Of a stretch of DNA of 64,000 bases, positions 17,295 to 53,132 are shown one piece after another; within the stretch, counting starts at the first letter, position 1, and each line of letters starts with the position of its first letter. The position numbers were made by a program, and so were the translations under genes. The notes under the pieces were generated by a model. That model worked only from the letters and a program-made list of their open reading frames with translations, did no database searches and was not told the origin of the DNA. Source of the DNA: Macrostomum lignano (taxonomy: Eukaryota); the NCBI GenBank assembly GCA_002269645.1, contig NIVC01001403.1:62001-126000 (forward strand). The letters are read 5' to 3'.

Positions 17295-18840
17295 ATCCCA
17301 ACAAATTCAAAATCCCATTCTCAACAAATTTGAAATCCCATTCTCAACAAATTTGAAATCCCATTCTCAACAAATTTGAAATCCCATTCTCAACAAATTT
17401 GAAATCCCATTCTCAACAAATTTGAAATCCAATTTCTAAACAACTTTAAAATCCCATTCTCAGCAAATTTAAAATCCCATTCTCAGCAAATTTAAAATCC
17501 CATTCTCAACAAATTTGAAATCCCATTCTCAACAAATTTGAAATCCCATTTCTCAAAAAATTTCAAATCCCATTTCTCAACAAATTTCAAATCCCATTCT
17601 CAACAAATTTGAAATCCCATTTCTCAACAAATTTGAAATCCCATTTCTCAACAAATTTAAAATCCCATTTCTCAACAAATTTGAAATCCCATTTCTCAAC
17701 AAATTTGAAATCCCATTTCTCAAAAAATTTCAAATCCCATTTCTCAACAAATTTCAAATCCCATTCTCAACAAATTTGAAATCCCATTTCTCAACAAATT
17801 TGAAATCCCATTTCTCAACAAATTTAAAATCCCATTCTCAGCAAATTTAAAATCCCATTCTCAACAAATTTGAAATCCCATTCTCAACAAATTCAAAATC
17901 CCATTCTCAACAAATTTGAAATCCCATTCTCAACAAATTTGAAATCCCATTCTCAACAAATTTGAAATCCCATTCTTAACAAATTTGAAATCCCATTCTT
18001 AACAAATTTGAAATCCCATTCTCAACAAATTTAAAATCCCATTCTCAACAAATTTGAAATCCCATTCTTAACAAATTTGAAATCCCATTCTCAACAAATT
18101 TGAAATCCCATTCTCAACAAATTTGAAATCCCATTCTTAACAAATTTGAAATCCCATTCTCAACAAATTTAAAATCCCATTCTCAACAAATTTGAAATCC
18201 CATTCTTAACAAATTTGAAATCCCATTCTCAACAAATTTAAAATCCCATTCTCAACAAATTTGAAATCCCATTCTTAACAAATTTGAAATCCCATTCTCA
18301 ACAAATTTGAAATCCCATTCTCAACAAATTTGAAATCCCATTTCTCAACAAATTTGAAATCCCATTTCTCAACAAATTTGAAATCCCATTTCTCAACAAA
18401 TTTGAAATCCCATTCTCAACAAATTTGAAATCCCATTTCTCAACAAATTTGAAATCCCAATTCTCAGCAATTTAAAAATCCCATTCTCAACAAATTTGAA
18501 ATCCCATTCTCAACAAATTTGAAATCCCATTTCTCAACAAATTTGAAATCCCAATTCTCAGCAAATTTAAAATCCCATTCTCAACAAATTTGAAATCCCA
18601 TTTCTCAACAAATTTGAAATCCCATTCTCAACAAGTTTAAAATCCCATTCTCAACAAGTTTAAAATCCCATTCTCAACAAATTTGAAATCCCATTCTCAA
18701 CAAATTTGAAATCCCATTCTCAACAAATTTGAAATCCTATTCTCAACAAATTTGAAATCCCATTCTCAACAAATTTGAAATCCCATTCTCAACAAATTTG
18801 AAATCCCATTCTCAACAAATTTGAAATCCCATTCTCAACG
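17295..18840. repeat. 23/24-bp minisatellite (AAATCCCATTCTCAACAAATTTG), about 65 copies
   Basis: 23-nt period (17341 and 17364). Confidence 0.95.
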
Positions 18841-18995
18841 CGCAGGGACTAAAAATTTTTAATCCTGATCTCAAACTGAGGACAGAGCATTGATCACTTG
18901 GACAAAAATAGCAACACAATGGCGAACAGAAAAAAAAACAGATTTTTAAAAAATCGCACAGAAAGCTGGCCTTCTTTTTAAAGGAAAAAAACGCG

Positions 18996-21900
18996 TCAAA
19001 GAATCTCGCATCTGCGCTTTTTCGGCTTCTTGCTGCGTCCGCCGCCGTTTCCGGTGACGGCCGTTTGCTGCTTCCGGTGATGAATCTCGGTCAGCAGGTC
19101 GTAGAAAGCCTTGGTTACAATTCGATTAATAAAAGAAGGTTGAGAAAATTTATATTGCATTTTCAACAAACCGACAATGCGTGAAAATTTAGATTGCGAA
19201 TCAAAATTGACTGCTAATAGGCTTTCATCGCTACTAACGGTAGTGCTATTTGAAAAGCTATTTAGACTAAATTTTCGGGTTGAATAATTTTTTTCTATAA
19301 TCATGTAATTGAATTTGAAATACGTAATCTCACTGTGCATGCAATTTAAGTTTGCGAAGCTATACAAAAATCAATTCTCTGAAATTTTGATTGCAGAGTT
19401 TCCACCGTGAAGAGGGAAGAGGGAAGGTGTGGAAGGAGATGAAGGGGGCTTGAAGGGGATTTGGGAGAAACGGGCGAGGGAGGGCGTCAGGCGATGAGGG
19501 TGAAAGATGAGGGAAGGTAGGAGGGTATGCGGGATGGGATGATGAGGGGTGAGGGAGAGTAGGAGGGTAGAGGCAGAGGATGAGGGAAGGTAGAGGGAGG
19601 GGATAAGAGAGGGTAGAGGCAAGGGATAAGAGAGGGTAGAGGGAGGGGATAAGAGAGGGTAGAGGCAAGGGATGAGGGAAGGTAGAGGGAGGGGATAAGA
19701 GAGGGTAGAGGCAAGGGATGAGGGAAGGTAGAGGGAGGGGATAAGAGAGGGTAGAGGCAAGGGATGAGGGAAGGTAGAGGGAGGGGATAAGAGAGGGTAG
19801 AGGCAAGGGATGAGGGAAGGTAGAGGGAGGGGATAAGAGAGGGTAGAGGCAAGGGATGAGGGAAGGTAGAGGGAGGGGATAAGAGAGGGTAGAGGCAAGG
19901 GATGAGGGAAGGTAGAGGGAGGGGATAAGAGAGGGTAGAGGCAAGGGATGAGGGAAGGTAGAGGGAGGGGATAAGAGAGGGTAGAGGCAAGGGGTGAGGG
20001 AAGGTAGAGGGAGGGGATAAGAGAGGGTAGAGGCAAGGGATGAGGGAAGGTAGAGGGAGGGGATAAGAGAGGGTAGAGGCAAGGGATGAGGGAAGGTAGA
20101 GGGAGGGGATAAGAGAGGGTAGAGGCAAGGGGTGAGGGAAGGTAGAGGGAGGGGATAAGAGAGGGTAGAGGCAAGGGATGAGGGAAGGTAGAGGGAGGGG
20201 ATAAGAGAGGGTAGAGGAAGTGCAAGAGGGAGAATAAATGAGAGAGAAAGAGATAAACAGGTACAGAAGGAAAATAGATGGGGCGAAAACAATGCATGAC
20301 GGATGGAGAACTAATAAATATCACTATTAAGAGCGATTGCTTCTTAACTACTGATTGATTCTGTAGTCATCAGTCTGGCAGACAATATGATAATAATATG
20401 AATTTATTGCGCCAGCAAACAGCTCTCGAATCAAAATGTATAATACAATAGCTGTTTGCTAAGCTAGCTATAGTACTGTAACAAAATAGACTATTGTCGG
20501 AGTGAGAGAGTGTGCGTAGGCTGCGCTCAAAGCAGGCTGCAGCAGCATTTGGCAGACGAGCCGCCACCCTGCAGAGCAGCCATGCCAGACTGCTGCCTGT
20601 TCAGCTGCGGCCGGCCGCGCTTGTGGTCCAGCACGGAGCGGATCAGGCCGAAGAAGGCCTTCGTTGTATTGCGTGTAATTTATTTTATTGTTTTGCATTG
20701 CGCGTTACATTTTTACAAAATAAAATGCTTGCACTGCCGCTAATGAGTAGGAATATTCGGACATCACCTACCAATGTTGAAAAATAATCATAAATGGACA
20801 AAAATCATTACACTGTCTCGGGGTCATGAGACTGTCGGGGAGTGATGAGACTTATCTGGGAGTGATGAGATTTGTCTGAGAGTGATGAGACTTATCTGGG
20901 AGTGATGAGATTGTCTGAGAGTGATGAGATTGTCTGGGAGTGATGAGATTTGTCCAAGAGTGATAAGACTGTCCGAGAGTGATGAGATTGTCTGAGAGTG
21001 ATGAGATTGTCTGGGAGTGATGGGATTTGTCCAAGAGTGATGAGACTGTCCGAGAGTGATGAGATTTGTCCGGGAGTGATGAGATTTGTCCGGGAGTAAT
21101 GAGATTTTCTGGGAGTTATGGGATTGTCTGGGAGTGATGAGACTGCCTGGGAGTGATGAGATTTGTCTGGGAGTGATGAGATTTGTCTGGGAGTGCGGAG
21201 ACTGTCGGAGTGACGAGACTGTCGGAGTGACGAGACTGTCTGGGAGTGCGGAGACTGTCGGAGTGACGAGACTGTCTGGGAGTGCGGAGACTGTCTGGGA
21301 GTGCGGAGACTGTCTGGGAGTGCGGAGACTGTCTGGGAGTGCGGAGACTGTCTGGGAGTGCGGAGACTGTCTGGGAATGCGGACTGTCGGAGTGACGAGA
21401 CTGTCTCGGAGTGCGGAGACTGTCGAAGTGACGAGAATGACGAGAACAAAGATGAGCGGCCCATCGAAAAGCGCAATCAATGGCTCACCTTGTCGACATT
21501 CTCTCTAGTTTTGGCTGAGGTTTCCAGGTAGGGGATTCGCCAGGCTTCGGCCCGGGCCTCGGCCTCCCTGGATTGCACCTGCCGGCCGTCGGTGAGGTCG
21601 CTCTTGTTGCCAACCAGCAGCATGGGGATGGACTCGTCGCCTTTTACTCGGATGATCTGCTCTCTGCGCGATGGATGCAGTGAGGAGAGAGTAAATTAAA
21701 TAAGCTTTGCCTGGGAGGGCTGGGAGAGTGGCTGGAAGGTAGGGAGTGTCCGGGAGGGTAAGGAGTGTCTGGAAGGGTAAGGAGTGTCCGGGAGGGTAAG
21801 GAGTGTCTGGAAGGGTAAGGAGTGTCCGGGAGGGTAAGGAGTGTCTGGAAGGGTAAGGAGTGTCCGGGAGGGTAAGGAGTGTCTGGAAGGGTAAGGAGTG

Positions 21901-23909
21901 TCCGGGAGGGTAAGGAGTGTCCGGGAGTTAAGGAGAGTCCAGGAGGGTAAAGAGTGTCCGGGAGGGTAAGGAGAGTCCGGGAGGGTAAGAAGAGTGTCCG
22001 GGGGTAAGGAGTGTCCGGGGGGTAAAGAGTGTCCGGGGGGTAAGGAGTGTCCGGCGGGTAAGGAGTGTCAGGGGGGTAAGGAGTGTCCGGGGGGTAAGGA
22101 GTATCCGGGAGGGTAAGGAGAGTGTCCGGGAGGGTAAGGAGAGTGTCCGGGAGGATAAGGAGTGTTGGGGGAAGGTATAAGTAGAGTCTGGGGAGGATAA
22201 ACAGTGTGTCTTATTGAGAGTAGAGTTTATGGTTAGAATACATGATACATGAGAGAGCGGGCACTGCACAGGAATAGAAATCGATGGCCCCAGAGACGCG
22301 AATTGACCTTACCTGAACTCATTAGTGGCGGCAAAGGACTCAGGATCGGTGAGCGAGAACACGCATAGGAAGCCCTCTCCGCCGCGGAAATAATTGTCCC
22401 GAATGCTGGCATAGTCCTCCTGGCCAGCCGTGTCCAGGATGTCAATGTGCACCTCGGTGCCCTCCAGGGTGACCTTCTTTCGATACATATCGGCTTTGGT
22501 TGGCTCGTAGTCTTCAACGAACTGGGCGCGGTTGAGACGGAGTTTGACAGAAATTAGCCTAACTATTCGTACATATAGCAATGCATGATGCTCAAGTAGT
22601 GCCACAAGTGCATGAGTAACTACCCTAAAAGTATCAGATTGTATGACAGCATGCAGATTGATTAGCAGGAGTGATCTTCTAAAGAGTGGGTAGAGTGACT
22701 AGGAGAGTGGGTAGAGTGACTAGGAGAGTGGGTAGAGTGACTAGGAGAGTGGGTAGAGTGACTAGGAGAGTGGGTAGAGTCCCTAGGAGAGTGGGTAGAG
22801 TCTATAGGAGAGTGAGTAGAGTGACTATGAGAGTGGGTAGAGTGACTAGGAGAGTGGGTAGAGTGACTAGGAGAGTGGGTAGAGTGACTAGGAGAGTGGG
22901 TAGAGTCTATAGGAGAGTGAGTAGAGTGACTATGAGAGTGGGTAGAGTGACTAGGAGAGTGGGTAGAGTGACTAGGAGAGTGGGTAGAGTGACTAGGAGA
23001 GTGGGTAGAGTGACTAGGAGAGTGGGTAGCTTCTAGAGCGTGGGTAGAGTGACTAGGAGAGTGGGTAGCTTCTAGAGAGTATAGAGTGACTAGGAGAGTG
23101 GGTAGCTTTTAGAGAGTGGGTAGAGTGACTAGGAGAGTGGGTAGAGTGACTAGGAGAGTGGGTAGCTTCTAGAGCGTGGGTAGAGTGACTAGGAGAGTGG
23201 GTAGCTTCTAGGAGAGTGGGTAGAGTGACTAGGAGAGTGGGTAGCTTCTAGAGCGTGGGTAGAGTGACTAGGAGAGTGGGTAGCTTCTAGAGAGTGGGTA
23301 GAGTGACTAGGAGAGTGGGTAGCTTCTAGAGCGTGGGTAGAGTGACTAGGAGAGTGGGTAGCTTCTAGAGAGTATAGAGTGACTAGGAGAGTGGGTAGCT
23401 TTTAGAGAGTGGGTAGAGTGACTAGGAGAGTGGGTAGAGTGACTAGGAGAGTGGGTAGCTTCTAGAGCGTGGGTAGAGTGACTAGGAGAGTGGGTAGCTT
23501 CTAGAGAGTGGGTAGAGTGACTTGGGGAGTGGGTCGAGTACTCGGGAGAGTGGGCAGAATTCCCGGGGGGATTGGGTAGAGTTCCCGGAAGAGTGAGTAG
23601 ATTGCCCGGGAATGGGTAGAGTGACTAGAAGAGTGGGTAGAGTGCCCTAGAAAATAAATATAGTGGCTAGTTATAAATAAGTAATCGACGAGAATTTAGG
23701 ACGAGATTACGGGGAGTCTGGAAGACAGCTAGAGCGGACAGTGATAATGTACATGCACAAAATTGCAACTTCAGCAGGACGACCGTAACGCTCACCTCGT
23801 CGTACATGAACTGCAGCGTAAGGGCGCTTTTACCAACGGCGCCGCTGCCAACCATAATGATTTTATGCACAGGCTGCGATGAGCTGGTCCCACTCTTCTG
23901 CTTGGACAT
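18996..23909 (-). CDS. RAL: Ras-like GTPase Ral, polybasic-tail isoform; exons 23909-23796, 22521-22313, 21663-21489, 19109-18996
   Basis: [35 protein letters not shown]; [17 protein letters not shown]; LVGNKSDL; [14 protein letters not shown]; tail [13 protein letters not shown] (CAAX). Phases 0,2,0 are consistent. Confidence 0.93.
19550..20220. repeat. 46-bp purine-rich minisatellite (GAGGGAAGGTAGAGGGAGGGGATAAGAGAGGGTAGAGGCAAGGGAT)
   Basis: 46-nt period (19681 and 19727). Confidence 0.95.
20403..20408 (-). terminator. Candidate AATAAA poly(A) signal for the alternative Ral terminal exon
   Basis: AATAAA on the minus strand about 119 nt after the TGA at 20527. Confidence 0.6.
20527..20658 (-). 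CDS. RAL: Alternative Ral terminal exon: [43 protein letters not shown]
   Basis: Phase-0 AAG|GCC acceptor in frame with exon 3. Starts AFF-L like helix 5 (paralogous to AFYDL in the distal exon) and ends in CAAX CSLL. It has its own AATAAA. Confidence 0.8.
   Translation of the reverse strand, partial: AFFGLIRSVLDHKRGRPQLNRQQSGMAALQGGGSSAKCCCSLL
20810..21440. repeat. 19-20-bp minisatellite drifting from GAGTGATGAGATTGTCTGG to GAGTGCGGAGACTGTCTGG, Ral intron 3
   Basis: Direct periodicity. Confidence 0.9.
21725..22165. repeat. 19-20-bp minisatellite (GGAGTGTCCGGGAGGGTAA), Ral intron 2
   Basis: Direct periodicity. Confidence 0.92.
22680..23650. repeat. 21-bp minisatellite (GGAGAGTGGGTAGAGTGACTA), Ral intron 1
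   Basis: Direct periodicity; source of the RVGRVTR artefact ORF. Confidence 0.93.
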
Positions 23910-24149
23910 GATTTCTTACTACTTTCAGTACTAGATAACGATTAAGACTATACTTGGCTTGTGATGTAATTAAATTTGCAATTTAGTTCGCAAACTGAGT
24001 GTGGCGTGGCAGCTGAAAAAAAATAAATTTGAGGCGTAAGTTTATAATTACCGATTAAATACATATACAGGTACTACTATGAGTAAAGTAAATTTCAAAC
24101 CTCTAATCTGGAATTCGCGCACATTTTGCGGGTACTTCACAGGTGGAGT

Positions 24150-25050
24150 CCCTATTAGAGTGGGTAGAGTTTCTATGAGTGGTAGAGTCCATGGGAGTGG
24201 GTAGAGTCCATAGGAGAGTGAGTAGAGTCCTTGGGAGCGTGGGTAGAGCCCCTAGGAGGGTGAGTAGAGTCCCTAGGAGAGTGGGTAGAGTCTATAGGAG
24301 GGTGAGTAGTCCCTAGGAGAGTGAGTAAAGTCCCTAGGAGAGTGGGTAGAGTCTATAGGAGAGTGAGTAGAGTCCCTAGGAGAGTGAGTAGAGTCCCTAG
24401 GAGAGTGAGTAGAGTCTATAGGAGAGTGAGTAGAGTCCCTAGGAGAGTGAGTAGAGTCCCTAGGAGAGTGGGTAGAGTCTATAGGAGGGTGAGTAGTCCC
24501 TAAGAGAGTGACTAGAGTCCCTAGGAGAGTGGGTAGAGTCTATAGGAGAGTGAGTAGAGTCCCTAGGAGAGTGAGTAGAGTCCCTAGGAGAGTGAGTAGA
24601 GTCCCTAGGAGAGTGAGTAGAGTCCCCAGGAGAGTGAGTAGAGTCCCTGGGAGAGTGAGTAGAGTCCCTAGGAGAGTGAGTAGAGTCCCTAGGAGAGTGA
24701 GTAGAGTCCCTAGGAGAGTGAGTAGAGTCCCTGGGAGAGTGAGTAGAGTCCCTGGGAGAGTGAGTAGAGTCCCTGGGAGAGTGAGTAGAGTCCCTAGGAG
24801 AGTGGGTAGAGTCCCTAGGAAGGTGAGTAGAGTCCCTAGGAGAGTGGGTAGAGTCCCTAGGAGAGTGAGTAGAGTCCCTAGGAGAGTGAGTAGAGTCCCT
24901 GGGAGAGTGAGTAGAGTCTCTGGGAGAGTGAGTAGAGTCCCTAGGAGGGTGAGTAGAGTCCCTAGGAGGGTGAGTAGAGTCCCTAGGAGGGTGAGTAGAG
25001 TCCCTAGGAGGGTGAGTAGAGTCCCTAGGAGTGTTTAGTCCCTAAGAGAG
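24150..25050. repeat. 21-bp minisatellite (GGAGAGTGAGTAGAGTCCCTA) upstream of Ral, related to the intron 1 array
   Basis: Direct periodicity; shares the GGAGAGTGRGTAGAGT core. Confidence 0.93.
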
Positions 25051-25519: not shown

Positions 25520-26716
25520 TCACTTCTTCTTGGCGGTGAGACCTGCGCCAGCGTTGAACTTGAAGAAGATAATATCCCCGTCCTGCACCACATACTCCCT
25601 GCCCTTCTGCTTGTATTTGCCTTTGGCTTTCACCTCGCTCTCCGAGCCACACTCTTTATAATCTTCGAAGCTCATAACCTCGGCCATGATGAAGCCATTC
25701 TCCATGTCGGAGTGAATCTTGCCGGCAGCCTGAGGTGCTTTAGTATTTAGCGGAATTGTCCAAGCTTTCACTTCGTCTTTGCCGGCGGTGAAAAAGTACT
25801 GCAGCTGCAGAGCCTTGTAGCCGGTTGAGATGATTTTGCCCAGAGCCGAGCTCACCCCGTGCTCCTTAGAGAACTCAGCCCTCTGCTCATCGGTCATGTC
25901 CGCCCATTTAAACTCCAGCTCAGCGGACAGCGGGATCACTGCGGCTCCCGGATCGTGCTGGTCAATCCACTCCTTGATCTTTGGCAACCATTTGTTCTTC
26001 TTCCGAATGAAGTCCTTCTCGCTCAGGTTAACCAGGTACACGATTGGCTTAGCGGTGATGAACAGGTGCTCGTTGAGCAAATCGATTTCTTTGTCATTCC
26101 ACTGCTCGAACCGAAGCGACCGTTTCTCTTCGACAACGATCCGGTGCACCTTCTGGAAGGCTTCGAAAAGCGCCGTTTTGGACTTGTCGCCGCCGCGGGT
26201 GACCACCTTCTCCAGCTTCTCAAACTCCTTCACAATGTAGGCCTCATCTTTCAGCCGGAGCTCCTCGGAGATGATTTCTAGATCGCGGATGGGATCTACT
26301 TCGCCTTCAATGTGGGTGACCTCCTGGCAGTCGAATGCGCGCACCATGTGGAACAGCGCGTCAACGCCGCGGATATTGCTAAGGAAAGCGTTGCCAAGAC
26401 CCTGGCCTTCGCTGGCGCCTTTAACTAGGCCTGCAATGTCCCAGACATTGAGATAGGCGGGCACCCTGCTGGCAGGCTTCCAGTGCTCGCACAGCCATTC
26501 CCACCTGTCGTCTGGCACAGCCACCCGGCTCTCGTGCGGATCAATAGTGCAAAATGGGAAATTCTCGGCCGGAGCCGAGCTCTTCGTCAGCACGTTGAAG
26601 AATGTACTTTTGCCAACGTTGGGCAGGCCGACAATGCCGATCTTGAGGTTGCTGCCCATCCGGCCAATGATTGGCGGGTTTTTCGGCTCATCTGCTCCCT
26701 TCTTCTTTGGCGGCAT
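25520..26716 (-). CDS. OLA1: Obg-like ATPase 1 (YchF family), 398 aa, single coding exon
   Basis: [15 protein letters not shown]; [11 protein letters not shown]; [24 protein letters not shown]; NLSE G4 motif; TGS domain [12 protein letters not shown]...[12 protein letters not shown]. Confidence 0.97.
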
Positions 26717-37000: not shown

Positions 37001-38576
37001 ATCTGACTATCAGAGTGACAATTCGACTATCAGAGTGACAATCTGACTATCAGAGTGACAATCTGACTATCAGGACTAAAATCTGGTGAGTTTTAACTTC
37101 AATAGTATACACCTGGCGCATACCTGAGCAGTCGGCAGTGGACTGAGTATTATCCCGCAAAATGACGGCCAGATTCTGTTTAAAATCTGCCAGCGCCAAT
37201 TCAGCCTGGGATCTGTCACCGGAATCGGAAGCGATAGCAGCGCGACCCGAGCCGGCGGATTGGGCCAGGCCACGGCCAAGACGGCGAACTTCTGACACCA
37301 GACTGGGCGACTTGGCGAGGCAGGTGGACAGCAGGTTGTCTGAAGAGGGTTAGGGTGATGCTGCAGATAAGCTTTCATGTGAGCAGTGAGGATCTGGGAG
37401 TGCGGCAGGTGCTCAGCAACTGAGGATCTGGGAGTGCGGCAGGTGGCCCAGCAACTGAGGATCTGGGAGTGCGGCAGGTGGCCCAGCAACTGAGGATCTG
37501 GGAGTGCGGCAGGTGGCCCAGCAACTGAGGATCTGGGAGTGCGGCAGGTGGCCCAGCAACTGAGGATCTGGGAGGAATAAAAGTACTCAAAGTAGGCCAC
37601 TCACCAACAGACGCAGGTAAGTCGATGCTGTCATCATCGGAGCCGCTGCTCACTTGAGCCTCCAAGTTGCACGCAGCGGTGAAGCGGGCGTCAATGAAGC
37701 TCTGCAGTTGGCTCACCGCTGTAGTTGGCGAAATTTCTGCATTGTTGAAAAAATGAAAATAAAGCAGTTGCAGCACCATTGTGTAGGAGAATCCATCTTA
37801 GATAAGTAGGGACCTGAGCGGAGTGAACTATTGCTCACTCGGTAAATATAGGGACCTGAGCGGAGTGAACTATTGCTCACTCGGTAAATATAGGGACCTG
37901 AGCGGAGTGAACTATTGCTCACTCGGTAAATATAGGGACCTGAGCGGAGTGAACTATAGCTCATTCGGTAAATATAGGGACCTGAGCGGAGTGAACTATT
38001 GCTCACTCGGTAAAAATAGGGACCTGAGCGGAGTACTGGCATAAATAGAACAATGCATTAAAACTACATATATTGCACACCTGCATCTGTTCCATTGACT
38101 TCAGAAGCTTTATCAGCCGGTTTGCTGCTAGCAGATGCATTGGCAACAACAACAGCAGAAGCAGTATCAGAAGAGGCTGGCAAGCACCGCGTCAGAGCCA
38201 CCTGAGTCTCCGATAGCAGACAATCTGCCAAATCGTCAAGCGATGAATCTCCATTTCCAGCATCCTCATTGCTGGCATTGTTATTAAACTCCTCGGCGGC
38301 CTTGCAAACTTCATCAAGCTGCTTAGCTAGGCTAGCCAGATTCAGCTTAGCAATCTTGTCCACCGAGGCGCAAATGGCAGCTTCACTGGGCTGCCCATCG
38401 CTAGATGACGGTGCCAGTTTCCGCTTCCGGTTGCCATTTCCCGTCTGGCTGGAACTGCCATCCAGGCCAGATTGGGTCAGCCGGTTCAAAAAGTTGGACA
38501 CTTCATCGGCTGCTGTGGCCGAGGCTGCATCAACCTCGGGCATGTCCGGGCCATTGCCCAGCTTGGAGGTGAGCAT
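28097..38576 (-). CDS. About 1058-aa protein with a C-terminal region resembling the TASOR/FAM208 (HUSH) alpha-beta and PIN-like domains; exons 38576-38081, 37736-37605, 37339-37124, 36559-36341, 33584-32982, 32348-31903, 30938-30566, 29765-29175, 28197-28097
   Basis: Nine exons join through GT-AG junctions with fully consistent phases (1,1,1,1,1,0,1,1), totalling 3177 nt. C-terminal motifs: CADLASRLTSLGHRQCDP, LPGLLELRKRRDVRF, IFPVTGG, RWPIGIRARDLRRLRD, LLGCVDGLAELQ, LAEFGCETATVGQLL. The gene model is well supported; the family call is from recalled motifs and the start codon is uncertain. Confidence 0.65.
28240..29100. repeat. 21-bp minisatellite (CACCTGCTGTTTCCTGTCTGT), last intron of the TASOR-like gene
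   Basis: Direct periodicity; source of several artefactual ORFs. Confidence 0.93.
29840..30545. repeat. 28-bp minisatellite family A, second array
   Basis: Same unit and orientation as 26930-27480. Confidence 0.92.
31175..31430 (+). mobile_element. 5'-truncated tRNA-derived SINE with a CORE-like domain
   Basis: B-box GGTTCGATTCC at 31203-31213; CACCCAGCTGTAAAATGGGTA at 31232-31252 resembles the conserved CORE-SINE motif; (TAT)n-like tail at 31411-31429; no A-box seen. Confidence 0.55.
31440..31755. repeat. 28-bp minisatellite family A, third array (GACCCTGAAA variant)
   Basis: Same GAGGATCWGGGAGGCTG core. Confidence 0.9.
32530..32930. repeat. Degenerate ~25-bp repeat (GGGAATTAGCTGAATTGGGAGATTT)
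   Basis: Diverged copies visible. Confidence 0.8.
33612..36310. repeat. 23-bp minisatellite (TAGACTAGGGAAATATGGATTGC), about 117 near-identical copies
   Basis: Direct periodicity; it fills nearly the whole intron 33585-36340. Confidence 0.97.
36625..37075. repeat. 20-bp minisatellite (GAGTGACAATYTGACTATCA)
   Basis: Direct periodicity. Confidence 0.93.
37385..37575. repeat. 35-bp derivative of family A (CTGAGGATCTGGGAGTGCGGCAGGTGGCCCAGCAA), about 5 copies
   Basis: Family A unit with a 7-bp internal expansion. Confidence 0.88.
37805..38035. repeat. 42-bp minisatellite (GGGACCTGAGCGGAGTGAACTATTGCTCACTCGGTAAATATA), about 5.5 copies
   Basis: Direct periodicity; internal GAGTGA...TCACTC stem. 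Confidence 0.92.
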
Positions 38577-39529
38577 GTGACAGCTGCTGCTGTTTGACTC
38601 TCGAGTTGCAGGTGAAAGTTTTAATAAATTGATTGACTTGGCACTGGGAGAGCAAAAGTTGCAGCATAAATGCAGCAGCAAGTAATTCAATACAATTGTG
38701 AAAATATACAACCCTTTAGATTCAATTTAGCAGCTATAAGGAGGAAACTGTCAGAGTCAGATGCAGATAAACATTGATTTTAAGTATTTCTTTATTGCAG
38801 AATTTTCTACAGCTTCTATAATACTTTATGAAGATAGGAAATTTTAAAAAGCAATTTAGTGCTAAGTGATACCTGATTTTGAAGAGGCTTAGTGTGTATA
38901 GATTTCTATTAAATATACCTAGACTATTGTGATAATATCTTTAAGATTTGTGCCATTTAAATAAATGCCAATTCATCAAATTAACACTATCAAAATTTTG
39001 GCTTTCTAAAAAATTAGGCTGCAACAAAAGTTTTGAGCATTTTTGAGCATTTTGAGCACCCTATCCATAGCCCATAGTCCAGATCATGGCAGGCGTAGGC
39101 TGGAATGAAAATTCATGTTTTTTAAATTTTATGCTGACATAAAATAAAAAATTTTTCACACCAAGACTAAAATTGTTTATATGCCATTTTTTCAAAGCAT
39201 ATATATTTTTAGGAATTCAAAACTTTTATTTAACTTTAAAATGGCTGTTTTTTTTGCTAAAAACTGAATATTGTTTGTTTTAATTTGGCCTTTCTTATAA
39301 TTTTACATTATTATTTTCAATTTTAGTTTCCAATTATTTTTAAAGAGCTTTCAATGTTGGTTGATATTTAACTACACAATTACACTAGCCTTGAACTTGG
39401 CTATTTTTGTATGCCGACTGTGTACACTTCATGTCAAACCTGAAAATTCTATATGCCAAGTGTATGCCAAGATTGTCAGCGAGACCAAAAATATGCCGGA
39501 AAATTCTGGCGAAAAGGCCACCTTCGAAT

Positions 39530-40640
39530 GAGTATAACTTTGGCTGTCAACTTTTCTATCAACTATTCCATTAACTTTCTGTCAACTATTCCATTAACTT
39601 TTCCATCAACTATTCCATTAACTTTCTATCAACTATTCCATTAACTTTTTCATCAACTATTCCATTAACTTTTCTATTAACTATTCCATTAACTTTCTGT
39701 CAACTATTCCATTAAATTTTCCATCAACTTTTATGTCAACTGTTTCATGAACAATTATGCAAGTCTGTTAACTAGATTCCATCAAATTTTCTGTGTACTC
39801 TGAATGGAAAGTGATATTTTTCTGTATAAATGCAGACTTTTCCTTTGCAATTTTTTATGCATGCTTAAATTGGTTGAGTATTTATGTATATGTATAAATT
39901 ATAAATAAATAACACACATGCAATTTTTTTTGTGTGAATTTAAATGGTATTGCTGCACTATTTGCACTATATCTGCACTTGTTTTATCGATTCATCTTTG
40001 GTAACTAGGGTAAATGGAAAAGATGCACGTTTTTACTAATGTAGGCTTGTTTTTTCATTGATATATAAGCATACAAACAGTCAATAAATGAGCAAAGAGC
40101 TACTTGCATGATGATCCTATTTGACAAAGTCACATGTTTCTCCAAACATTAAATTGCACTTTAATGAATGCATTTAAAGTGCAACACTATACTTTTTTTA
40201 ATTAAATACATAGGTCGCTAGAATTTTGCCTATCCCCTAAAAAATATTGAAAGAGTTCTAATCAAATTATTTTTGATTAATTAAAGTACAATAAACATGT
40301 CCTGCTAACAGTTAACTACATATGCTCACACAAGGACTTCTAGATTTACTAGACCAACTAGTTAGTCTAGAAGTCCTTGTGCTCACAATTTACAAATAAA
40401 AATAACATTAATGTATGAGCTTGGATGTCATACAGAATTATTTCATAAAAGTTGATGGATAAAGTTGAAGGAAAAGTTGACAGAAAAGTTAATAGAGAAG
40501 TTTATAGAAAAGTTGATGGAAGAGCTAACAGAAAAGTTGACAGATAAAGTTGTGTACCCAACTTATAGGAAAAGTTGATGGAAAAGTTAACAGAAAAGTT
40601 AATGGAAAAGCTGAAAGAAAAGTTGATGGCCAAAGTTATA
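39530..40640. mobile_element. Foldback/MITE-like element with repetitive inverted arms (39530-39760 and 40440-40640)
   Basis: GAGTATAACTTTGGCTGTCAACTTTT versus AAAAGTTGATGGCCAAAGTTATA; the TCAACTATTCCATTAACTTT repeats are mirrored by AAAAGTTGATGGAAAAGTT repeats. Confidence 0.6.
40330..40380. mobile_element. 51-bp hairpin insertion with perfect 15-bp TIRs (ACAAGGACTTCTAGA) and a GCTCAC flanking duplication
   Basis: GCTCAC at 40324-40329 and 40381-40386 flanks an exact inverted repeat. Confidence 0.6.
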
Positions 40641-42432
40641 TTTGTACCTTCCTGACTATGTCCCATACCACAGGGCCTAGTCCAGATCATGCTGGGTGCA
40701 TGCCTGAACAAAAATTGAATAATTACAAATGCACACCAGAAAAAATGTAGTGCATGCCCATTCTAAAAAATATGCCAGTGTTGCAACAATAAATGACCTT
40801 TTTTACGTTGTGACAATAAAATACTTTTTTTTAAATTAGGCCTACATAATAAACCCCTATTACCAAATAATTTGGTTGCTTTTTATGCTTTTTTGGCAAT
40901 ACTATTTATAGCAGAAAATTTAAACACTCAAAGATTTGTTTAAATACCCTTTTAAGAGCTTGAAAAAACTAGAAAGCTTGAAATTTGCACTTAAAAATGA
41001 ACTTTTTCATCTTTTTTCTACTTCACAATAACTTTTACACATGATTCTATAAAGTTCACACTAGGTGTGCACGCACACTATCTTCTCAGGAGTGATGCAC
41101 ATTGCACGCCAACTGTGCACGCCTAATTTTGGCATGCAAGGCCAATGCACACCCAAATTTTTGGGCATAGGCCTATACTATATGATCCAGTCCAGAGTGT
41201 GGGTCCCATCCCATAGCCATAGGCATAGGGTCTTACTTTAAGGGATATAGACTAGAAAAAACTTTTTAAAATATATTTAGATATTAGTATTTAATAAAAT
41301 CTTGTCTTAAAAGTTTTTAAAACTACAAAAACTTTTAGGCCTATGTTTATACCAACAAAAAACCCAATGTAGGCTTTATATTTGACAAGTCATACCTCAT
41401 AGGACCCCCACCCCACTAAAGTCCCTATGCCAGGTAACAAAAATCATGACATGATGCCAATTGATGGTCATGCTGATGCCTATGAGGACTAAAAAGTGGT
41501 TTGGCAAAAAATTAAAGATTCAGACCTAAAGATTTTAAAGACCTAGACCTAGGCCTAGTCAAAGCAAAGAAACTAGTATAGGTCTAGTTCAATTTAATGC
41601 ACTGGATATTTATGTAATTAAAAGGAAGTTGTTTGATTGGCGATTACACTAGGCCTACTGACTAGGTTAGCCTAACATGTTAGACGAAGTGTTTAACTTC
41701 GTTGAAAAATGAAACTCTCCATAACCATAACTAGAGGGAGATACGTGCTATAAAGTTTTTATTATTGAATGACAATCGCCAAGAAGAAAGTGAAAAATTG
41801 TGCTAAGTTAGGTTGTTAAGGCAGTCAAATATTAACAGAGTTTAATATTTATACTGCTGTTTTTCTTGGAATTCCGAACCGATTCTGGTTCTGGAATTGG
41901 TAATGTGAAAAGGCCCATTGAGAGATTCCGCGCGCTCTTTATTAAGTAGTAAGAGAATTTGGCTCAGGCAATTAGCCTGTTTGGCCAATATATTATAGAG
42001 CTATGTATTTGGAATTTTCGAATATAGAAGTTTATAAAGACGATTTGACGACGATTTGCTGAGTTATTGTAAAAGATAAAGTATTTGAAAGCGCGCCAGA
42101 ATTTTTACGGTATTTTTAGACGAAAAGTGACGACTAACAACTAACGAGTATAAATATTAATACAAAAATGAGTACAAATTACGAGGTATAGCTTTAATTG
42201 CGAGATTACTTTGGTAAGCGAGTTTGTAAAAAAAAAAGATGTAGTATTTTTGAAAGCGCGTGATATTTCAAAGCGTGAAAAACGAACATAAACAATACTT
42301 CGAAAGAATTTTACTTTTAACGAATAACGACGATTTAAATATAGGAAATTAAAAAAGACAGTAAATGAATAAACAACTGAAAAGCGGATTTGTTACACTG
42401 CTGATGTATCTGATTCAGTTTGTTTAACTGTT

Positions 42433-42867
42433 TTAGCTATTCATGACTTCATATATTTTAGCTACACCAGTGAGCTCTTTTCTGACTCTTTTTTCATTTG
42501 TAGCATATCCTATCTTGTGTATTTGATTGCTATTTAAGAGGTATTGACAGAAGTATTTTTTCCTGATCTCTTCAGTTTGTGGACATTCGGTCAAGTAGTG
42601 TAGAATGTCAGAACCATTTCGCGCTCCACACATTTTACATGGTTCTTGAGAAAAAAAGTTGGGTGTAATCTCGCATTTCAGTTTTAGGAGGGTTGTTAAG
42701 AATTTTTTGTTTCTAAATGTACATGGAAAGAAATCTGAAAGGTCGGGCCTGCAGATTTTTTTGTAGAGATAGGCGTTTTTGTAGAGTTTAATATGTTGCT
42801 GATTCTCTAGCTTTTGGCTAAGTTCTCTTTCTCTGTGTATCTTGAGGTGCTTTTTCCAAAGCATCAT
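42433..42867 (-). mobile_element. 3' fragment of a non-LTR retrotransposon ORF2 (post-RT CCHC domain)
   Basis: IKLYKN...LTTLLKLK...CKMC-x9-H-x4-C-PQTEEIRKKYF matches the LINE C-terminal zinc-knuckle pattern; no RT is visible upstream. Confidence 0.6.
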
Positions 42868-44499
42868 TTTCCCAAAGCTTTAATAACGAGAAATACCTAG
42901 TGAAAAAGACCTGGCGAAAATGATGTTTTTAAATTGCTTCATGATGACTCACTCGTTATTTCACGATGTTTTTTATAATATATTATAAATGCACTTTTCA
43001 TTACAATTTTGCACTTCAAAAGTCTATGCTCTTACCTTTTAGTATTGCAATGGCCGCCCTAACTTTATAACTTAAGAGGAATCAATCTTCATTCGTCCAA
43101 ATAAACTGCATACCAGTTTAATATAGTATTCGTTTCTTCTTGAAGCCAAAATCTTATTTAGAGCCTACATTATATTTTAATTGCAGATACGTAAAGACTA
43201 AAGATTATGTATATTTATGTTATTTTCTAGTAATCGTGCATACATGTTTATCGGCCAATCGTCCTAAAGAGCCTAAAAATAACTATAAAAATTAGGTTAC
43301 TTACTTTCTTATGTATTTATAATTTATCATTTTGCAAGAGCTGCACCTGATATTAAAAAACGTATTCATTCACGCATTTACATGTAGCTACTCCAAAAAA
43401 GCACATTCTGACAATTGCATTCGGAAAGATTCGCGTATACCGAAACCTATACATTTAAATTTTTAATTAAGATCACAGTTTAGTTGACTTAATTAGTTAT
43501 ATAATAAAGCAGGGGATATATACATGTACGTAACAACTGAGGCAGGTTCGCATTATCGCTACACCTTGCATGTACAAGCGTACATGTACGAGTAGCAGCG
43601 TAAGTCATAAAAAAGATTTATAGATCGAGTTTGTCCCAACAACCACCGTGTGAGACAGCAGAATTGTACATTGGTTGCCCAATAATTGCATAAATTTTCT
43701 CCCGGTGAAATGCTGGCACTTGATTATTGCATACGTATGCATACATCTTTGCTAAGTTATTTTAATGTGCGTTCATCAAAAATTAAATTTATTCATCACC
43801 CATATTGACCCAATAAAGATTTTCTAGTGGTAGTGATAAAATCGAAACTTTGCTAGCTGAAGCCTATAGTGTCGTATACAACCAAAGTATAAGTTCTAGT
43901 TAAACACATAGGTTGTAATAAAAATTTCAAGGTAGAACAGTTGAAAAATACTGAAAAATTTTTGAGATAAAACGATTAATTTTTTAAGAAGTTATATTAG
44001 TTTGTTTAAACTGAATAAGAAAGTTTAAAATACCAACTGATTTCCTGGAACAGCCCGCGCTGGGAACGGTCGAACGAAGTGTCAGTGTCAGCAAATGCTG
44101 AAAATGCTGATTGCATCGGCAGCACTTTTGCACTTTAGCTACCTAAGGATTATTGATACTTGAAAATGAATTGATAAAAGAATTTACTAATTTAAGAAAT
44201 GTATATTGTTTTATACATTTTTTAGTTTAAAATGTATTAAATTGCTTCTTACAATTTTATTTCTAATAGAAATTTTCTATGCTATGTCACGTATCTGACT
44301 GATGTTCCGATGGAATGGTATCAATAAAACATTGTCATTAATTGGCCTGGTTGGCTCTCTTATATTACCTCATCTTAGATCCTATCTTATTTCACTTAAA
44401 ACTAAAAGCGCTATACTTGTCAAACTATTTCCAATTGCCAATTAGATTGATTTAAAAATGCAATATAATAGAAATCAGGTAAAGTAGCTTGCTTGGCAA

Positions 44500-45620
44500 A
44501 TAAAATAAAAAGAAATCCAAAAATCAACATGTGGTTTTTTTCACACACCAAGGTGCATTGTCAGGTATATTGTTTGAGACAAAAGGTGTGAGTAAGCAAA
44601 TTTATAAATTATTTGTCAATGAAACGTATGTTAGTATGTAGCTGGTGAGTAAGTATTTTGTTTATTATATAGCTTTGTATTTTGTTTCATAGCTGGTGAG
44701 TCACCCACCCTTAATACGCAACTCCAACACAATGGTTCAGGCCATGTTTTTTGATTCCAGGTATTCTGAGTGAGAGAGCATTGACCTTGTTGTAACCACT
44801 GCTAACTCAATTATATTTTGTTTTCTACCTATTGGACATAGTCAGGAAGGTGTCCAGTGTATGCAGGAACTAATTCTGGGCAAAATTTAGCCTGTACACC
44901 AATGTACGCCAATTTTTTTAGCTTCATTTCGAACATTACGCTGTACACTGAGTCTGAAGTCCTTTTTCCATATTTGAAATTGGATTTTACGAAAGAATGG
45001 ACTACTTTATTGCATGCAACAATTTAAAAAAAGTTGAAAACAGAAACAAATAAAACAATTCTTTTTTCACAAAAGTGCAAAATAACAATCTTTAGAAATA
45101 GTTTTCCATTATCTGCTTATTTTTTATTATTCTTTAATTTTTTCAATGGCCATAAATCAACAAAGACATATGATACAATGCAAATAAGATTGAATATTAT
45201 TTGTAAAAAAGGTCACTGTGCAATTGCTTATGTATACAGACAGTGATTATGATGCTGCCAGTAAAATTGGTACACCGATTTTGTCGTTCTGTTGTGTGTG
45301 TACACAGATACGCAAGTTTTCTAAAGATCTGTATGCTGAAACTGATTCTAACGGCCAAGTGTACGCGGGATTATTCCTGCGTACGGACACCTTCCTGACT
45401 ATGGCCTATTGGTCTTTGCCTTGCCTTGCCATATGGACTATTAACCTCCTACTACTCTGTACATACAAAATACTTACTCACTAGCTACATACATTTCATT
45501 GACAAATAATTTATAAATTCGCTTACTCACACCTTCTGTTTCAAACAATATAACTAACAATGCACCTTGCTATGCAAAGAAAAAAACTACATGTTGATTT
45601 TGGGATTTATTTTCATTTTA
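44500..45620. mobile_element. About 1.1-kb foldback element with long imperfect inverted arms
   Basis: 44500-44665 is the reverse complement of 45466-45620; the inner arms 44831-44880 and 45371-45410 also pair. Confidence 0.75.
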
Positions 45621-45628
45621 ATAGAAGT

Positions 45629-46032
45629 TTTGGCAATTGTCAAGTTCCATTCGTTAAATTATTTTAACTCTAGAAAAGTATTATACAAACTGTTTTAAGT
45701 ACAAATAACTACTTTTAAGAGACTTCAGTTTAATTAGGCACTAATTCTATGCTTTAAGTTCAAAACTTGTTGTAAATATAATGTATCTGACATAGAAAAG
45801 CTGCAATAGTCTATGGCTAAAATGTTAACAAGTGAAAAAGTCTTAATAGAAACAAATAAAAAGTATTATTATTGATGGTCAAATTGCCAATAAATAGCAA
45901 AAGCTTTAAAATATAGAATTAGTGCTTAATCAGGCTTGTCTCTTAAAAGTATTTATTTTTACTTGAAACAATTGGTATAATACTTTTCTGGAGTCAAAAT
46001 AATTTATTGAACAAAACTTGACAATTGCCAAA
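45629..46032. mobile_element. MITE-like element with perfect 18-bp TIRs (TTTGGCAATTGTCAAGTT)
   Basis: 45629-45646 is the reverse complement of 46015-46032; no TSD discerned. Confidence 0.5.
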
Positions 46033-46238
46033 GTTTTTTATATTTGACTTTTATAAAAGTCATATATTGTAAGGCCTAATTATATATAGTAGTTGTTATA
46101 TTATTATAGTTACCATATAAATAGCAAAATTTACTTTTAGGGTCAACGCATAAGATACATCTGGGCCTAGGGTCTTTATTTAATATAACTAGGTGTTAAA
46201 CAATATTGAATTTATCAAGATTTTTTACTTCAAGATTT

Positions 46239-47024
46239 GGCTCATTCCATATAAGATAGACATATTTGGAAAATAGAAAAAAGTCAATATTTTTGCTTGC
46301 CATTGCCTAATTAGCCTATTTTTTTACCAAATGTTTATATTGTGCAATATATACAATCTAAGAATAAAGGAATGGTAAAATGTTGGATTAGTATGTTATC
46401 AATTGGCAAAAAGTCATTTTTGTAAAAATTTGGACATTTTTCGAAGCAAAAGACATCATTAAGATTTTGTACCTTTTAAAAACAAATAGAAAGCTTTTGA
46501 AGGTTGAAACAAACTATAGATAAAAGTATAGTACTTGCATCATCAGATAAAAGCATTGGTGACCAAATAATCTATTATATTTTTAATGTATTAGTACCTC
46601 AAAGTTACTGAATTGACAGAAAAAAATATGTTACGACCATAATGTTACGACCATAAGGCTGCCTTTTCTTTTGTATCTTTGTTGACTTTTGAGTTTATAT
46701 ATTCTAATAAAAGAGTATGATTTCTAAAGATGTTCTTAGTCAAATTTTAAAAATGTATTGCAAAATATCAAAAATGAAAAATGTTATAAGACTTTTACCT
46801 TTTAGTTTCTATATGTCAAAAATCCTGTCGTTACGACCATAAGTGTCATTTAAGGTTTAATAGCATCTATACTAATGATGATATCTATATGAAACTCTAT
46901 AAATATATTCTAGACAAAATAATCTTTCATTTAAAATATTGGTTTAGTATATTCTATTATTAGATTTCATTTTATAAGTAAAAATAACCTGTCATGTTAC
47001 GACCATGCTTATATGGAATGAGCC
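46239..47024. mobile_element. MITE with perfect 17-bp TIRs (GGCTCATTCCATATAAG) and subterminal GTTACGACCAT repeats
   Basis: TIRs at 46239-46255 and 47008-47024; GTTACGACCAT occurs 4 times (about 46630, 46645, 46830 and 46996). Confidence 0.65.
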
Positions 47025-47269
47025 ATTTTATATTTTTTCAACAATACAATATGAGATTTGATCAAGATTTTAAGATATATAATTCAAAGGCCTAATTCAA
47101 ATTAGACAAAGCTAAAAAACTGAAACTAGGCCTACCCGTATAACTTTAGTTAAAATCATAACCTTTAGTTCATAAAAAACATAGATTTTTTAGTTCATCA
47201 TTTTTCTTAATATGGCTTAATCCATTAATATGGATGACACTATAATAGGTTGATTTTTGGTATTAATTT

Positions 47270-48010
47270 GATCGAATTTGAATACAATCTACTTTGGTAT
47301 AGCCACTTTGGTAACTGCTACTTCAGTAATAAAAAATGACCACTTTGGTAATAGCCACTTTAGTAACTAAGTAGATTTATGACTACCAATACTATATTTT
47401 TATGGTAATTAAGTTTAGGAACTATTAGTTTAATAATTAACATTTAAACTATTTCATTGCCTAGTGTAGTTTAATTTTCTATTTAAACTAAATTATAATT
47501 TGTTTAAATTTGTGCATTACTTTATAACAAAAATTTAAAGGTGACAGAGAACAACATGCCAATTTCCAGTTTAAAGTTGAAATATTAAAGTGAATAAATT
47601 TAAAATTATAAATGAAAAAAGTAGATTTGGTCAACAAAGTTGCTAACTCAAAGATTCTAATATATATTATATTTGGTCAACAAGATGTCTTAGTTTGTAC
47701 ATATATCTAGTGCACCTAGAAATTAAAATGAAATTTTTTTGTAGATTAAAATATACATTGTTTTTAGCTTTAATCCAAATCTTCAAGTTTTCAAGAACCT
47801 ATTAATCAATTGTTTTTTGTTGTTCTTTCTTTAAACTTTGTTTGTAAAATATTTTTTGAGCATATCAATCAATATATACTGCTATTTCCACTTGTTATTG
47901 AAGTGGCTATTATCAAAATGGCTGTTACAAAATTGGACACATAATTTGTTACCAAAGTGGTTGTTACCAAATTGGACTATTACCATTTAATTCATGTTGA
48001 ATTCAATCTC
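47270..48010. mobile_element. MITE-like element with inverted CCACTTTGGTAA(T)AG / TTACCAAAGTGG subterminal repeats
   Basis: The repeat cluster at 47290-47370 is mirrored at 47895-47990. Confidence 0.55.
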
Positions 48011-51000: not shown

Positions 51001-53132
51001 ATAACTTTTTTTCTATATGTTTTTTCTAGTATATGTTGTCTTTCGATATTTTATAATTAATATTAGTTTGAATGTTTTATGTTTTGACCCCAATTGTAGC
51101 TAATGGCCATTATTGCAAATAATATCTGATATAGATTGGCCCCTTACAGTGGCACAATGTGCAATGATTGGCATTGCATATGGTAATAGCATATCATGCA
51201 GGGTAGTGGCATAATGCATAGTTCGAGCACTAGGAAGGGGTGTCCTATACACCAAATTGCTAATCCGTGGGACTTGCACTAGTATAAGAAAGGGAAGGAA
51301 GGCATCTAGTATAGTTCAGACCTTAACTGCAATAGGGGTCACAATTATCCTTAACAGAATTACCCTATTGCTATTCATGGTTATTGTATCAACAATATTT
51401 CAAAAAATATGATTCAAGCCTCTAATAGAAGAAGGTTTTCATTTTATTTATCTTCTAAATTGGCCAACAGTATGTTTTAATAGATTAATATATTATTTGT
51501 CAACTGTTGACATGATAATGTATTGCAGTTCTTATTGTAAGATTTATTAAATATAAATAAAACATGAGTGAAAATACATGAGAGAAAAAAGGAAAGTATT
51601 ATTTTTAGTTATGCTTGCACTTTTATAATATTCAGTTGTAGGTATCACTAATATTAGGAAATAACTTTGTTACATTATGTGAAATACCCAGCAGAACTAG
51701 CCAATCTAGCCATATAGCAAGGGGCCTAGCCAATTTGTTCAGTTGATATTTTGCATTTTTGGTCAAAAAGTAAGTTGCATGGCCAATATCAATTGGGAGG
51801 TTGCGCATACATGTATTTTAATGCAATAGTTTACTAGACATTTTTTTAGATTTGAACCTTACTAAAAAAGAGTATTGGTATTAGCTAGGGGTCAGATAGA
51901 TCTCAACCTCAAATGCATCTTTAATATCAAATCCCTATGTTTAATCTCAACAATCTTATCTCATTTTCCTATTTTGGTCTCAATATTGTCTTAAACATAA
52001 ATAAAGTTGAGGTTTAAGATTTTATATCTATAGCTTTCCCTTGCTCTATTAGCTGCATTCACCAACAGATACCACACCCATATATAGGCCTATAGTACAC
52101 ATTAGCAATCTAGTGCCCCCCTTTGGGTCACCCAAAAAGCAAGAGGCAAATTATTTATGTGAATCCTACTTTCCTTGACACCTAAGCAATCCCCCCCTAT
52201 AAACCTTGGCATCTCAACAAATATAAATATTCTATACAATATTTGAGTCAGTATACAATTCACTTAAAAAAATTTATGTATAACAATGTTAGCATCTAAT
52301 ATTATTTATTATTTTGCATACAAAGACTAAGTATATTATTGTAAATGGCAATAATATTATAGGTTAAATTAAAATAAAGACAACAAAAATTAGGCTTATG
52401 TTTTATGATTGAAGACATTAGAGAAAAGGTAATTGTTGTGTCTAGTAACTGATGTATTTGTCTTGTTGCAGATTATCTCTTATGGCTGATATTGCTTTTT
52501 AATAAATGCATTTCATGTCCCCCTCCAAATGGGAACATCAGACAAGTATAGCAAAACAGTTAAATTATGTCAGTAAACAGTAAACGCACGCCAACTAGTG
52601 TCAATCTTAGCTAGTTCATGCCATAGCGAGTTTATGGTGCAAATCTGTTAGGTTGCTGCCTAATGTGTGAGCTTTGTCTCAGCGTAGACATTGGATGCTG
52701 TCCATCATCATCCGGGGTCGTTGCCGGTGTAGCAGTAATCTTAAAGAGAAGTTAATGGTTTTTTAGCTAATAAAATAACAAACCAATGTACAAGGTTTTT
52801 TATGATAAAATTTTTTTTATAATATTAAAGTTCTAAAGTACAGCATTGATTAAATGTTCAAAAATTAGTCTTTTAGTTAGGAAATCATTTTTAATTTTTT
52901 AAAGAAAATGCTTATCTACTTTTGTGGCTAAAGTTGCAGTATAAGAAACCTCAATAGGTTTATTAATAAAATCTCTATGACTCCTGACTGGTCCATGTTA
53001 AGCGAAACTTTAATGTACTTTTATTTATGCATGACTAAAACCGTCTTGCCAATCAGACAATCCGTCCAGTGAAAGCCCTTTAGCCAACATTCGCTATCGA
53101 TAGCAGCAGAACAATAAAGCCATTGTAAGGCC

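Follow-up and report, generated by a model that had tools for sequence, protein, structure and literature searches.

Can one invertebrate Ral gene supply two proteins with different membrane-targeting tails? The question is raised by a minus-strand gene of the flatworm Macrostomum lignano, located in a window of 64,000 nucleotides (nt) that covers positions 62,001 to 126,000 of contig NIVC01001403.1 (assembly GCA_002269645.1; coordinates below are those of the window). The third coding exon of this gene is followed by two potential terminal exons, a distal one used in the annotation and a proximal one, whose isoform the M. lignano annotation lacks. Our analysis indicates that the proximal exon is probably functional, and we consider it fairly likely to be a genuine, maintained alternative last exon of the Ral gene.

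Two terminal exons of the Ral gene

The assignment of the gene to Ral, made in the original prediction from the DNA letters, is borne out by database comparisons, which identify it as a Ral orthologue. An exact-sequence look-up revealed that exons 1-3 together with the distal exon encode exactly the protein PAA68321.1 (BOX15_Mlig024478g1), which matches the Pfam Ras family (PF00071, 185 bits, residues 16-176). Its best matches among known structures are Ral proteins, not HRAS or KRAS (Drosophila Ral-a, 5cm8, score: 281 bits; human RalA/RalB, score: 256-278 bits; HRAS/KRAS structures, score: ~190 bits), with a difference of ~65-90 bits in favor of the best Ral structures. Exons 1-3 sum up to 498 nt and therefore exon 3, which ends with ...ENVDK, closes in phase 0; its donor (21489) would be common to both terminal exons.

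Both terminal exons (Table 1) are preceded by AG, continue the frame of exon 3, complete helix α5 and end with a CaaX box directly before the stop codon (CSLL in the proximal and CEIL in the distal exon, i.e. with Leu at the last position in either case). Two in-frame terminal exons after ...ENVDK, with phase 0 and AAG/GC acceptors, had been reported in the original prediction, and all these statements on the sequence are correct. The proximal exon comprises the end of α5, followed by a weakly basic linker and, besides the CaaX box, two additional cysteines; its C-terminus reads K-C-C-C-S-L-L, so that the extra cysteines directly precede the CaaX cysteine, with almost no basic residues nearby. 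The distal exon contains a polybasic stretch (KKPKKRR) adjoining a CaaX box with a single cysteine. The contrast drawn earlier between a polybasic and a cysteine-type tail is thus found again, as far as the amino acid sequence alone can tell: one tail is polybasic, while the other is nearly non-basic and carries potentially acylatable cysteines next to SLL.

The polyadenylation (poly(A)) signal AATAAA ascribed to the proximal exon is indeed present 119 nt past its stop codon and is kept in all three copies of the locus found in the assembly, and a candidate ATTAAA signal follows the distal stop codon. The proximal frame was said to be missing from the list of open reading frames (ORFs), and so it is at the default length; with a minimum of 20 amino acids (aa) it appears only as a 35-aa GTG fragment. 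The list missed it because the frame has no upstream start codon.

The relationship of the proximal exon to Ral terminal exons is evident from several comparisons. Over its first 14 residues the exon aligns with VFFDLMREIRSRKT of Drosophila Ral-a (5cm8), both the Pfam Ras and the Ral-a structure alignments continue into the exon, and the HMMER alignment of the proximal isoform to Drosophila Ral-a extends to residue 180. In an alignment with 22 Ral proteins, the exon matches the invariant columns F168, L171, K179 and the CaaX cysteine, and it retains the hydrophobic α5 pattern F-F-x-L-I-x-x-V, with F168, L171 and I175V kept. AlphaFold2 predicted a single helix spanning the junction between exon 3 and the proximal exon (residues 161-181, predicted local distance difference test (pLDDT) 75-83), followed by a disordered tail. 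We also scanned ~70 kb of sequence downstream of Ral exon 3 from six loci with a relaxed pattern (AG, an α5-like start, and a CaaX or CC end), which reported only Ral tail exons and no spurious matches. Judging from these alignments, the proximal exon and the Ral terminal exon are homologous copies, and the exon duplication proposed in the original prediction agrees with our results: the two exons are arranged in tandem and share their phase, the AAG/GC acceptor and the α5 start, and each comprises an α5 end, a linker, a CaaX box and a stop codon. A chance ORF within an intron has next to no probability in our estimate. The sole point in its favor is the absence of the exon from the annotation, and we rejected it on the α5 homology with its matches in invariant Ral columns, the clean pattern scan and the Ral-a alignment.

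A third C-terminus is found in the UniProt entry A0A1I8IJF2 (P0003, 198 aa), which we rejected as an additional isoform. Its end corresponds to the intron 21488-21390 read after skipping the 5 nt gtgag, and it is, by this comparison, an annotation artefact.

Probable maintenance and predicted expression of the proximal exon

Polyploidy arose recently in M. lignano (PMC5704211, PMC10733133), and the assembly contains three genomic copies of the Ral locus (L001-L003), which were compared with the minisatellites masked (Table 1). The proximal exon is invariant among them (0/132 variable sites), with about 5 changes expected at the non-coding rate (Fisher p=0.008, both against all non-coding DNA and against the local flanks alone). 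It also forms a sharp compositional island, with a GC content of 0.66 and a GC content at third codon positions (GC3) of 0.82, between flanks with GC of 0.35-0.38, and its codon-position GC gradient is the same as that of the core coding sequence (GC3 0.73).

The age of the exon can be estimated from the old paralogue Mlig009726. The terminal exon of the paralogue shares 10 of 13 helix residues with the distal exon, including the derived T173 and H176, while the consensus residues F169 and R173 are kept in the proximal exon and lost in both the distal exon and Mlig009726. Exon 3 of the paralogues is 74% identical, and only 11 of 20 fourfold sites are identical, i.e. they are near saturation. 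The shared derived residues, together with this near-saturation, suggest that the exon copy is older than the gene duplication. Thus, the exon duplication probably predates the duplication that produced Mlig009726, which would later have lost its copy, and over such a span an exon out of use would be expected to lose its AG, frame, CaaX box or stop codon; both statements depend on few characters. The proximal exon is identical in the three M. lignano copies yet absent from the old paralogue, with analogous exons in the bee and the oyster (see below).

It may alternatively be argued that the exon duplication left the proximal exon behind as a silent relic, either unspliced or spliced as noise, and that it is intact owing to a recent split of the copies or to gene conversion. 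We regard this as unlikely, albeit with an appreciable residual probability, and several observations that weigh against our preferred interpretation belong here. The proximal acceptor is the weakest of the gene, with AAG placed after an A-rich, not a pyrimidine-rich tract. The nearly invariant Asp170 of α5 is replaced by Gly, as the sole odd residue. A single AATAAA within 267 AT-rich bases is not significant by itself, and the pattern scan found no second tail exon at the Mlig009726 locus. Gene conversion could also yield the identity of the three copies, and the conservation test draws on an expectation of about 5 changes, because the copies differ by only ~4% in non-coding DNA. The exon is not part of the annotation submitted along with the assembly, and exact look-up revealed the proximal isoform neither in a collection of 15 billion proteins nor in any correctly annotated protein. 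No transcript with the 21489-20658 junction turned up in collections that hold no RNA sequencing (RNA-seq)-derived sequences of M. lignano, and a word-indexed search with the proximal tail alone returned no candidate. On the other side, the derived residues discussed above suggest that the exon already existed when the paralogues separated, and yet its ORF, AG, CaaX box and stop codon are intact; the lack of variable sites, the coding-type composition, the retained hydrophobic positions of α5 and the working equivalents in the bee and the oyster all speak against a relic.

The failure to find the proximal isoform says little, because the annotated isoform is likewise without an RNA-seq-derived entry in the collection. 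A search for homologs of exon 3 joined to the proximal tail reported only canonical Ral tails, plus two contigs with CC tails. An exhaustive HMMER search with the proximal tail alone (1.84 billion representatives) produced two matches, of which one is an unrelated repeat protein and the other, P0208, a frameshifted, chimeric, automated M. lignano gene model that begins exactly with AFFGLIRSV... of the proximal exon. In P0208 this exon is wrongly fused with the Arp2-like gene that follows Ral, by way of frameshifts and a weak donor close to 20469. It is a case of another pipeline picking the same proximal-exon start, and no evidence of expression; the fusion could stem from an error-rich older assembly, or from a read-through or trans-splice-acceptor artefact.

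Exon choice, predicted isoforms and related systems

If the proximal exon is an alternative last exon, splicing would connect the exon 3 donor (21489) with one of two acceptors, 20658 or 19109. In the former case the transcript would probably be cleaved after the AATAAA at 20408-20403, and the sequence between the proximal stop codon and the distal acceptor would act as the proximal 3' untranslated region (3'UTR) and as intergenic-like DNA, while it would be an intron if the distal exon is used. Both products would possess the same G domain, to which each exon would add the last turns of α5, a flexible linker and a CaaX box ending with Leu. A Leu-ending CaaX box directs geranylgeranylation, and stable binding to the plasma membrane needs a second signal, which is either a polybasic stretch or palmitoylated cysteines adjoining the prenylated one. 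Both tails are predicted to be geranylgeranylated by geranylgeranyltransferase I (GGTase-I), because their CaaX boxes end with Leu. The polybasic patch KKPKKRR would provide the second signal of the distal tail, and the proximal tail has its extra cysteines arranged as in HRAS, KRAS4A, RhoB and brain CDC42, where this arrangement is palmitoylated; pairs of isoforms or proteins with different second signals include KRAS4B versus KRAS4A/HRAS and canonical versus brain CDC42 (PMC9663995, PMC11636682, PMC13236570, PMC4870516, PMC10883850). The two Ral isoforms would be expected to differ in their membrane residence and trafficking. We infer from the genomic sequence that the proximal exon is transcribed and spliced, that it uses its own poly(A) site, and that the two products differ in lipid modification and localization. 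The interpretation given in the original prediction, that choice between last exons yields differently localized isoforms from one Ral gene, is partly supported.

A true alternative last exon is preferred here, with moderate confidence, to a cassette exon, because there is no consensus donor past the proximal stop codon and a conserved AATAAA is found there instead. A cassette would carry its own stop codon and have the distal exon spliced behind it as part of the 3'UTR, so that skipping of the cassette would set the ratio of the isoforms. KRAS works in this manner (PMC9663995, PMC11636682), and so does Ral-a of the honeybee Apis mellifera, in which two tail exons (L004 11153-11269 and 11968-12072) follow the same ...VDK phase-0 intron. 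The first of them, 4a (VFFDLMREIRSRK...RKKKKCKIL), has a TAG stop as its last codon, immediately followed by a gt donor, and the second, 4b, encodes VFFDLMRAIAARK...KKKRNCCILL. RNA-seq contigs from the Logan assemblies, indexed in 74 collection blocks (24 contigs read out of this indexing; contigs L008-L011), join exon 3, 4a and 4b, while the product of skipping 4a is the RefSeq isoform X2 (XP_006570355.1), which the Logan assemblies contain as well. For Apis Ral-a, transcripts linking the common exon with each tail exon are thus found, as Logan contigs and as the RefSeq/Logan protein, and its splicing is exactly the KRAS4A cassette mechanism. A further point for a cassette in M. lignano is that the faulty model P0208 uses a donor ~58 nt past the proximal stop codon. 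However, a 5' splice site usable in the KRAS4A manner, present in Apis as TAG/gt, is not found after the M. lignano proximal stop codon, and no GTRAG-type donor occurs between this stop codon and the minisatellite. The AATAAA downstream of the stop codon is conserved, the first alternative exon of the oyster likewise has its own AATAAA, and the messenger RNA would be exposed to nonsense-mediated decay if its stop codon preceded the last junction by more than 50 nt. We consider a cassette exon in M. lignano decidedly unlikely.

A 236-aa protein with both Apis tails in one chain (P0100) was rejected as a real fusion: the gene caller read TAG as Gln in a transcript of the form exon 3-4a(stop)-4b.

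The Ral gene of the oyster Saccostrea cucullata possesses three tandem tail exons, each preceded by CAG (L012 18976-19143, 22751-22852 and 24102-24215). The first one (...SSSKGCCLII*) has AATAAA ~25 nt past its stop codon; its tail was not found as an isoform in the protein collection, and the exon may be unannotated. The second one (...TTKCCVVM*) corresponds to RefSeq isoform X2 (XP_062607691.1), and the canonical tail exon encodes ...KKSKKRKCTIL*, so that, as in M. lignano, the polybasic exon comes after the Cys-rich ones. Like the flatworm gene, the Apis X1/X2 and oyster Ral-A-like X1/X2 forms belong to the Ral family, have the intron after ...NVDK in phase 0 and possess tandem homologous tails with different basic charges and cysteine numbers. 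Apis differs in the reversed order of the exons, with the polybasic exon as the stop-carrying cassette and with a CC tail that is still polybasic (KKKRNCCILL), and the oyster differs in having three exons and CC instead of CCC. The bee and oyster isoforms are computational RefSeq models, and their exons and that of M. lignano may go back to a common ancestor or have originated independently. Many other invertebrate RefSeq entries are titled "Ral-a isoform X1" or "X2". At the Ral loci examined in the horseshoe crab (Tachypleus) and the sea anemone (Nematostella) a second tail exon was not found, and the RAL-1 isoforms of Caenorhabditis elegans differ only at the N-terminus (bioRxiv 10.1101/381707).

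Two Logan contigs (L013 1263-1523 and L014 1173-1598) encode Ral-like proteins whose tail directly continues exon 3, with no intron in between; their tails comprise long non-basic linkers with CC or CCC near the end (...NRICCCGLFRLG and ...SGWLSCCRIW).

Outside the Ral family, the closest parallel is provided by KRAS4A/4B, where one gene has two homologous exons, each with the end of the G domain, a linker, a CaaX box and a stop codon, in the same order as in M. lignano, i.e. the cysteine (palmitoyl)-type exon upstream and the polybasic one downstream (PMC9663995, PMC11636682). KRAS differs in that 4A is a cassette with 4B in the 3'UTR, whereas a poly(A) site of its own is probable for the M. 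lignano exon; in that its tails end with Met (farnesyl), whereas geranylgeranylation is predicted for both Leu-ending tails of M. lignano; and in that its alternative segment begins elsewhere in the G domain. Canonical (CVLL) and brain (CCIF) CDC42 are likewise produced from alternative 3'-terminal exons (E6/E7), with prenyl-only versus prenyl-plus-palmitoyl tails, separate 3'UTRs and different localization (PMC4870516, PMC10883850, bioRxiv 10.1101/366369, PMC13236570). CDC42 is, however, a RhoGDI-regulated member of the Rho family, and its brain isoform has a CCaX box in which the second cysteine is acylated, whereas in M. lignano the extra cysteines precede an ordinary CaaX box and the linker is different throughout. 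The M. lignano gene is probably a genuine further example of this known design, seen in KRAS4A/4B, CDC42 and the bee and oyster Ral genes, and it extends a known principle without establishing a new one. The bee, oyster and flatworm genes, taken together with KRAS and CDC42, suggest that tail switching by exon choice recurs in the Ras superfamily.

Ral GTPases act at particular membranes (at the exocyst, endosomes and mitochondria), and the difference between vertebrate RalA and RalB lies almost wholly in the C-terminal tail. RalA and RalB resemble the two predicted M. lignano isoforms in having near-identical G domains and a difference mainly in the hypervariable tail, which in the vertebrate proteins drives distinct localization and function (PMC9139244); both vertebrate proteins end with CCaL and are listed among palmitoylated GTPases (PMC13236570). 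They differ in being encoded by two genes, not two exons, and in that both tails are polybasic. The original prediction regarded the arrangement as undescribed for Ral. This holds for the papers, as no description of alternative C-terminal exons of Ral was found in the literature searched and they are absent from a review devoted to RAL (PMC9139244), but not for the databases, where RefSeq models them in Apis (XP_006570355.1) and S. cucullata (XP_062607691.1). We speculate, tentatively, that alternative CaaX-tail exons may be old and widespread in protostome Ral genes (flatworm, mollusc, insect) and have gone unnoticed in the Ral literature. Splicing of one gene would then give invertebrates the diversity of Ral localization for which vertebrates have two genes, RalA and RalB. 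If one flatworm gene yields both types of Ral, tagging or rescue with a single complementary DNA in invertebrates may miss half of Ral biology. The tails from different phyla offer a simple comparative system for the evolution of second membrane signals, and M. lignano, which can be made transgenic, could serve as a test system.

Surroundings of the locus

The features of the window discussed here are collected in Table 1, with the numbers of sites that vary among the three genomic copies.

Table 1. Features of the Ral locus of M. lignano and its neighborhood (window coordinates)
Feature	Position	Strand	Variable sites	Remarks
Proximal terminal exon	20527..20658	-	0/132	43 aa + TGA; acceptor ...caacgaag/
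Distal terminal exon (annotated)	18996..19109	-	2/114	37 aa + TGA; acceptor ...taaccaag/
AATAAA poly(A) signal	20403..20408	-		119 nt past proximal stop; kept in all three genomic copies
ATTAAA candidate poly(A) signal	18858..18863	-		133 nt past distal stop
Proximal stop to distal acceptor	19110..20526	-	3.6-4.0%	46-bp minisatellite 19563-20217
Intron, exon 3 to proximal exon	20659..21488	-		19-bp minisatellite 20812-21424; 3' end A-rich stretch + AAG acceptor
Ral coding exon 1	23796..23909	-		38 aa; donor GAG/gtgagc
Ral coding exon 2	22313..22521	-		switch I + switch II region
Ral coding exon 3	21489..21663	-		ends ...ENVDK, phase 0; donor AAG/gtgagc
Ral exons 1-3 together			3/498
YchF/OLA1-type gene, intronless	25520-26716	-	10/1197 (coding sequence)	398 aa; Pfam MMR_HSR1 + YchF-GTPase_C; directly upstream of Ral; conserved in all three copies
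Arp2-like actin-family gene	about 14860-10868	-		downstream of Ral
Minisatellites	17299-18839, 19563-20217, 20812-21424, 21734-22165, 22683-23644, 24146-25031
Unique non-coding DNA			89/2399 (3.7%)

Long minisatellites occur in every Ral intron and in both flanks, with periods of 19-46 base pairs (bp) and 14-66 copies, and are pyrimidine-rich on the sense strand. The three genomic Ral copies are 4914, 3770 and 3285 bp long, and these differences are likely due to the lengths of the minisatellites. Elsewhere in the window, the stretch 38000-52000 is AT-rich, with GC of 0.25-0.36 versus 0.45-0.59 in the gene-bearing parts.

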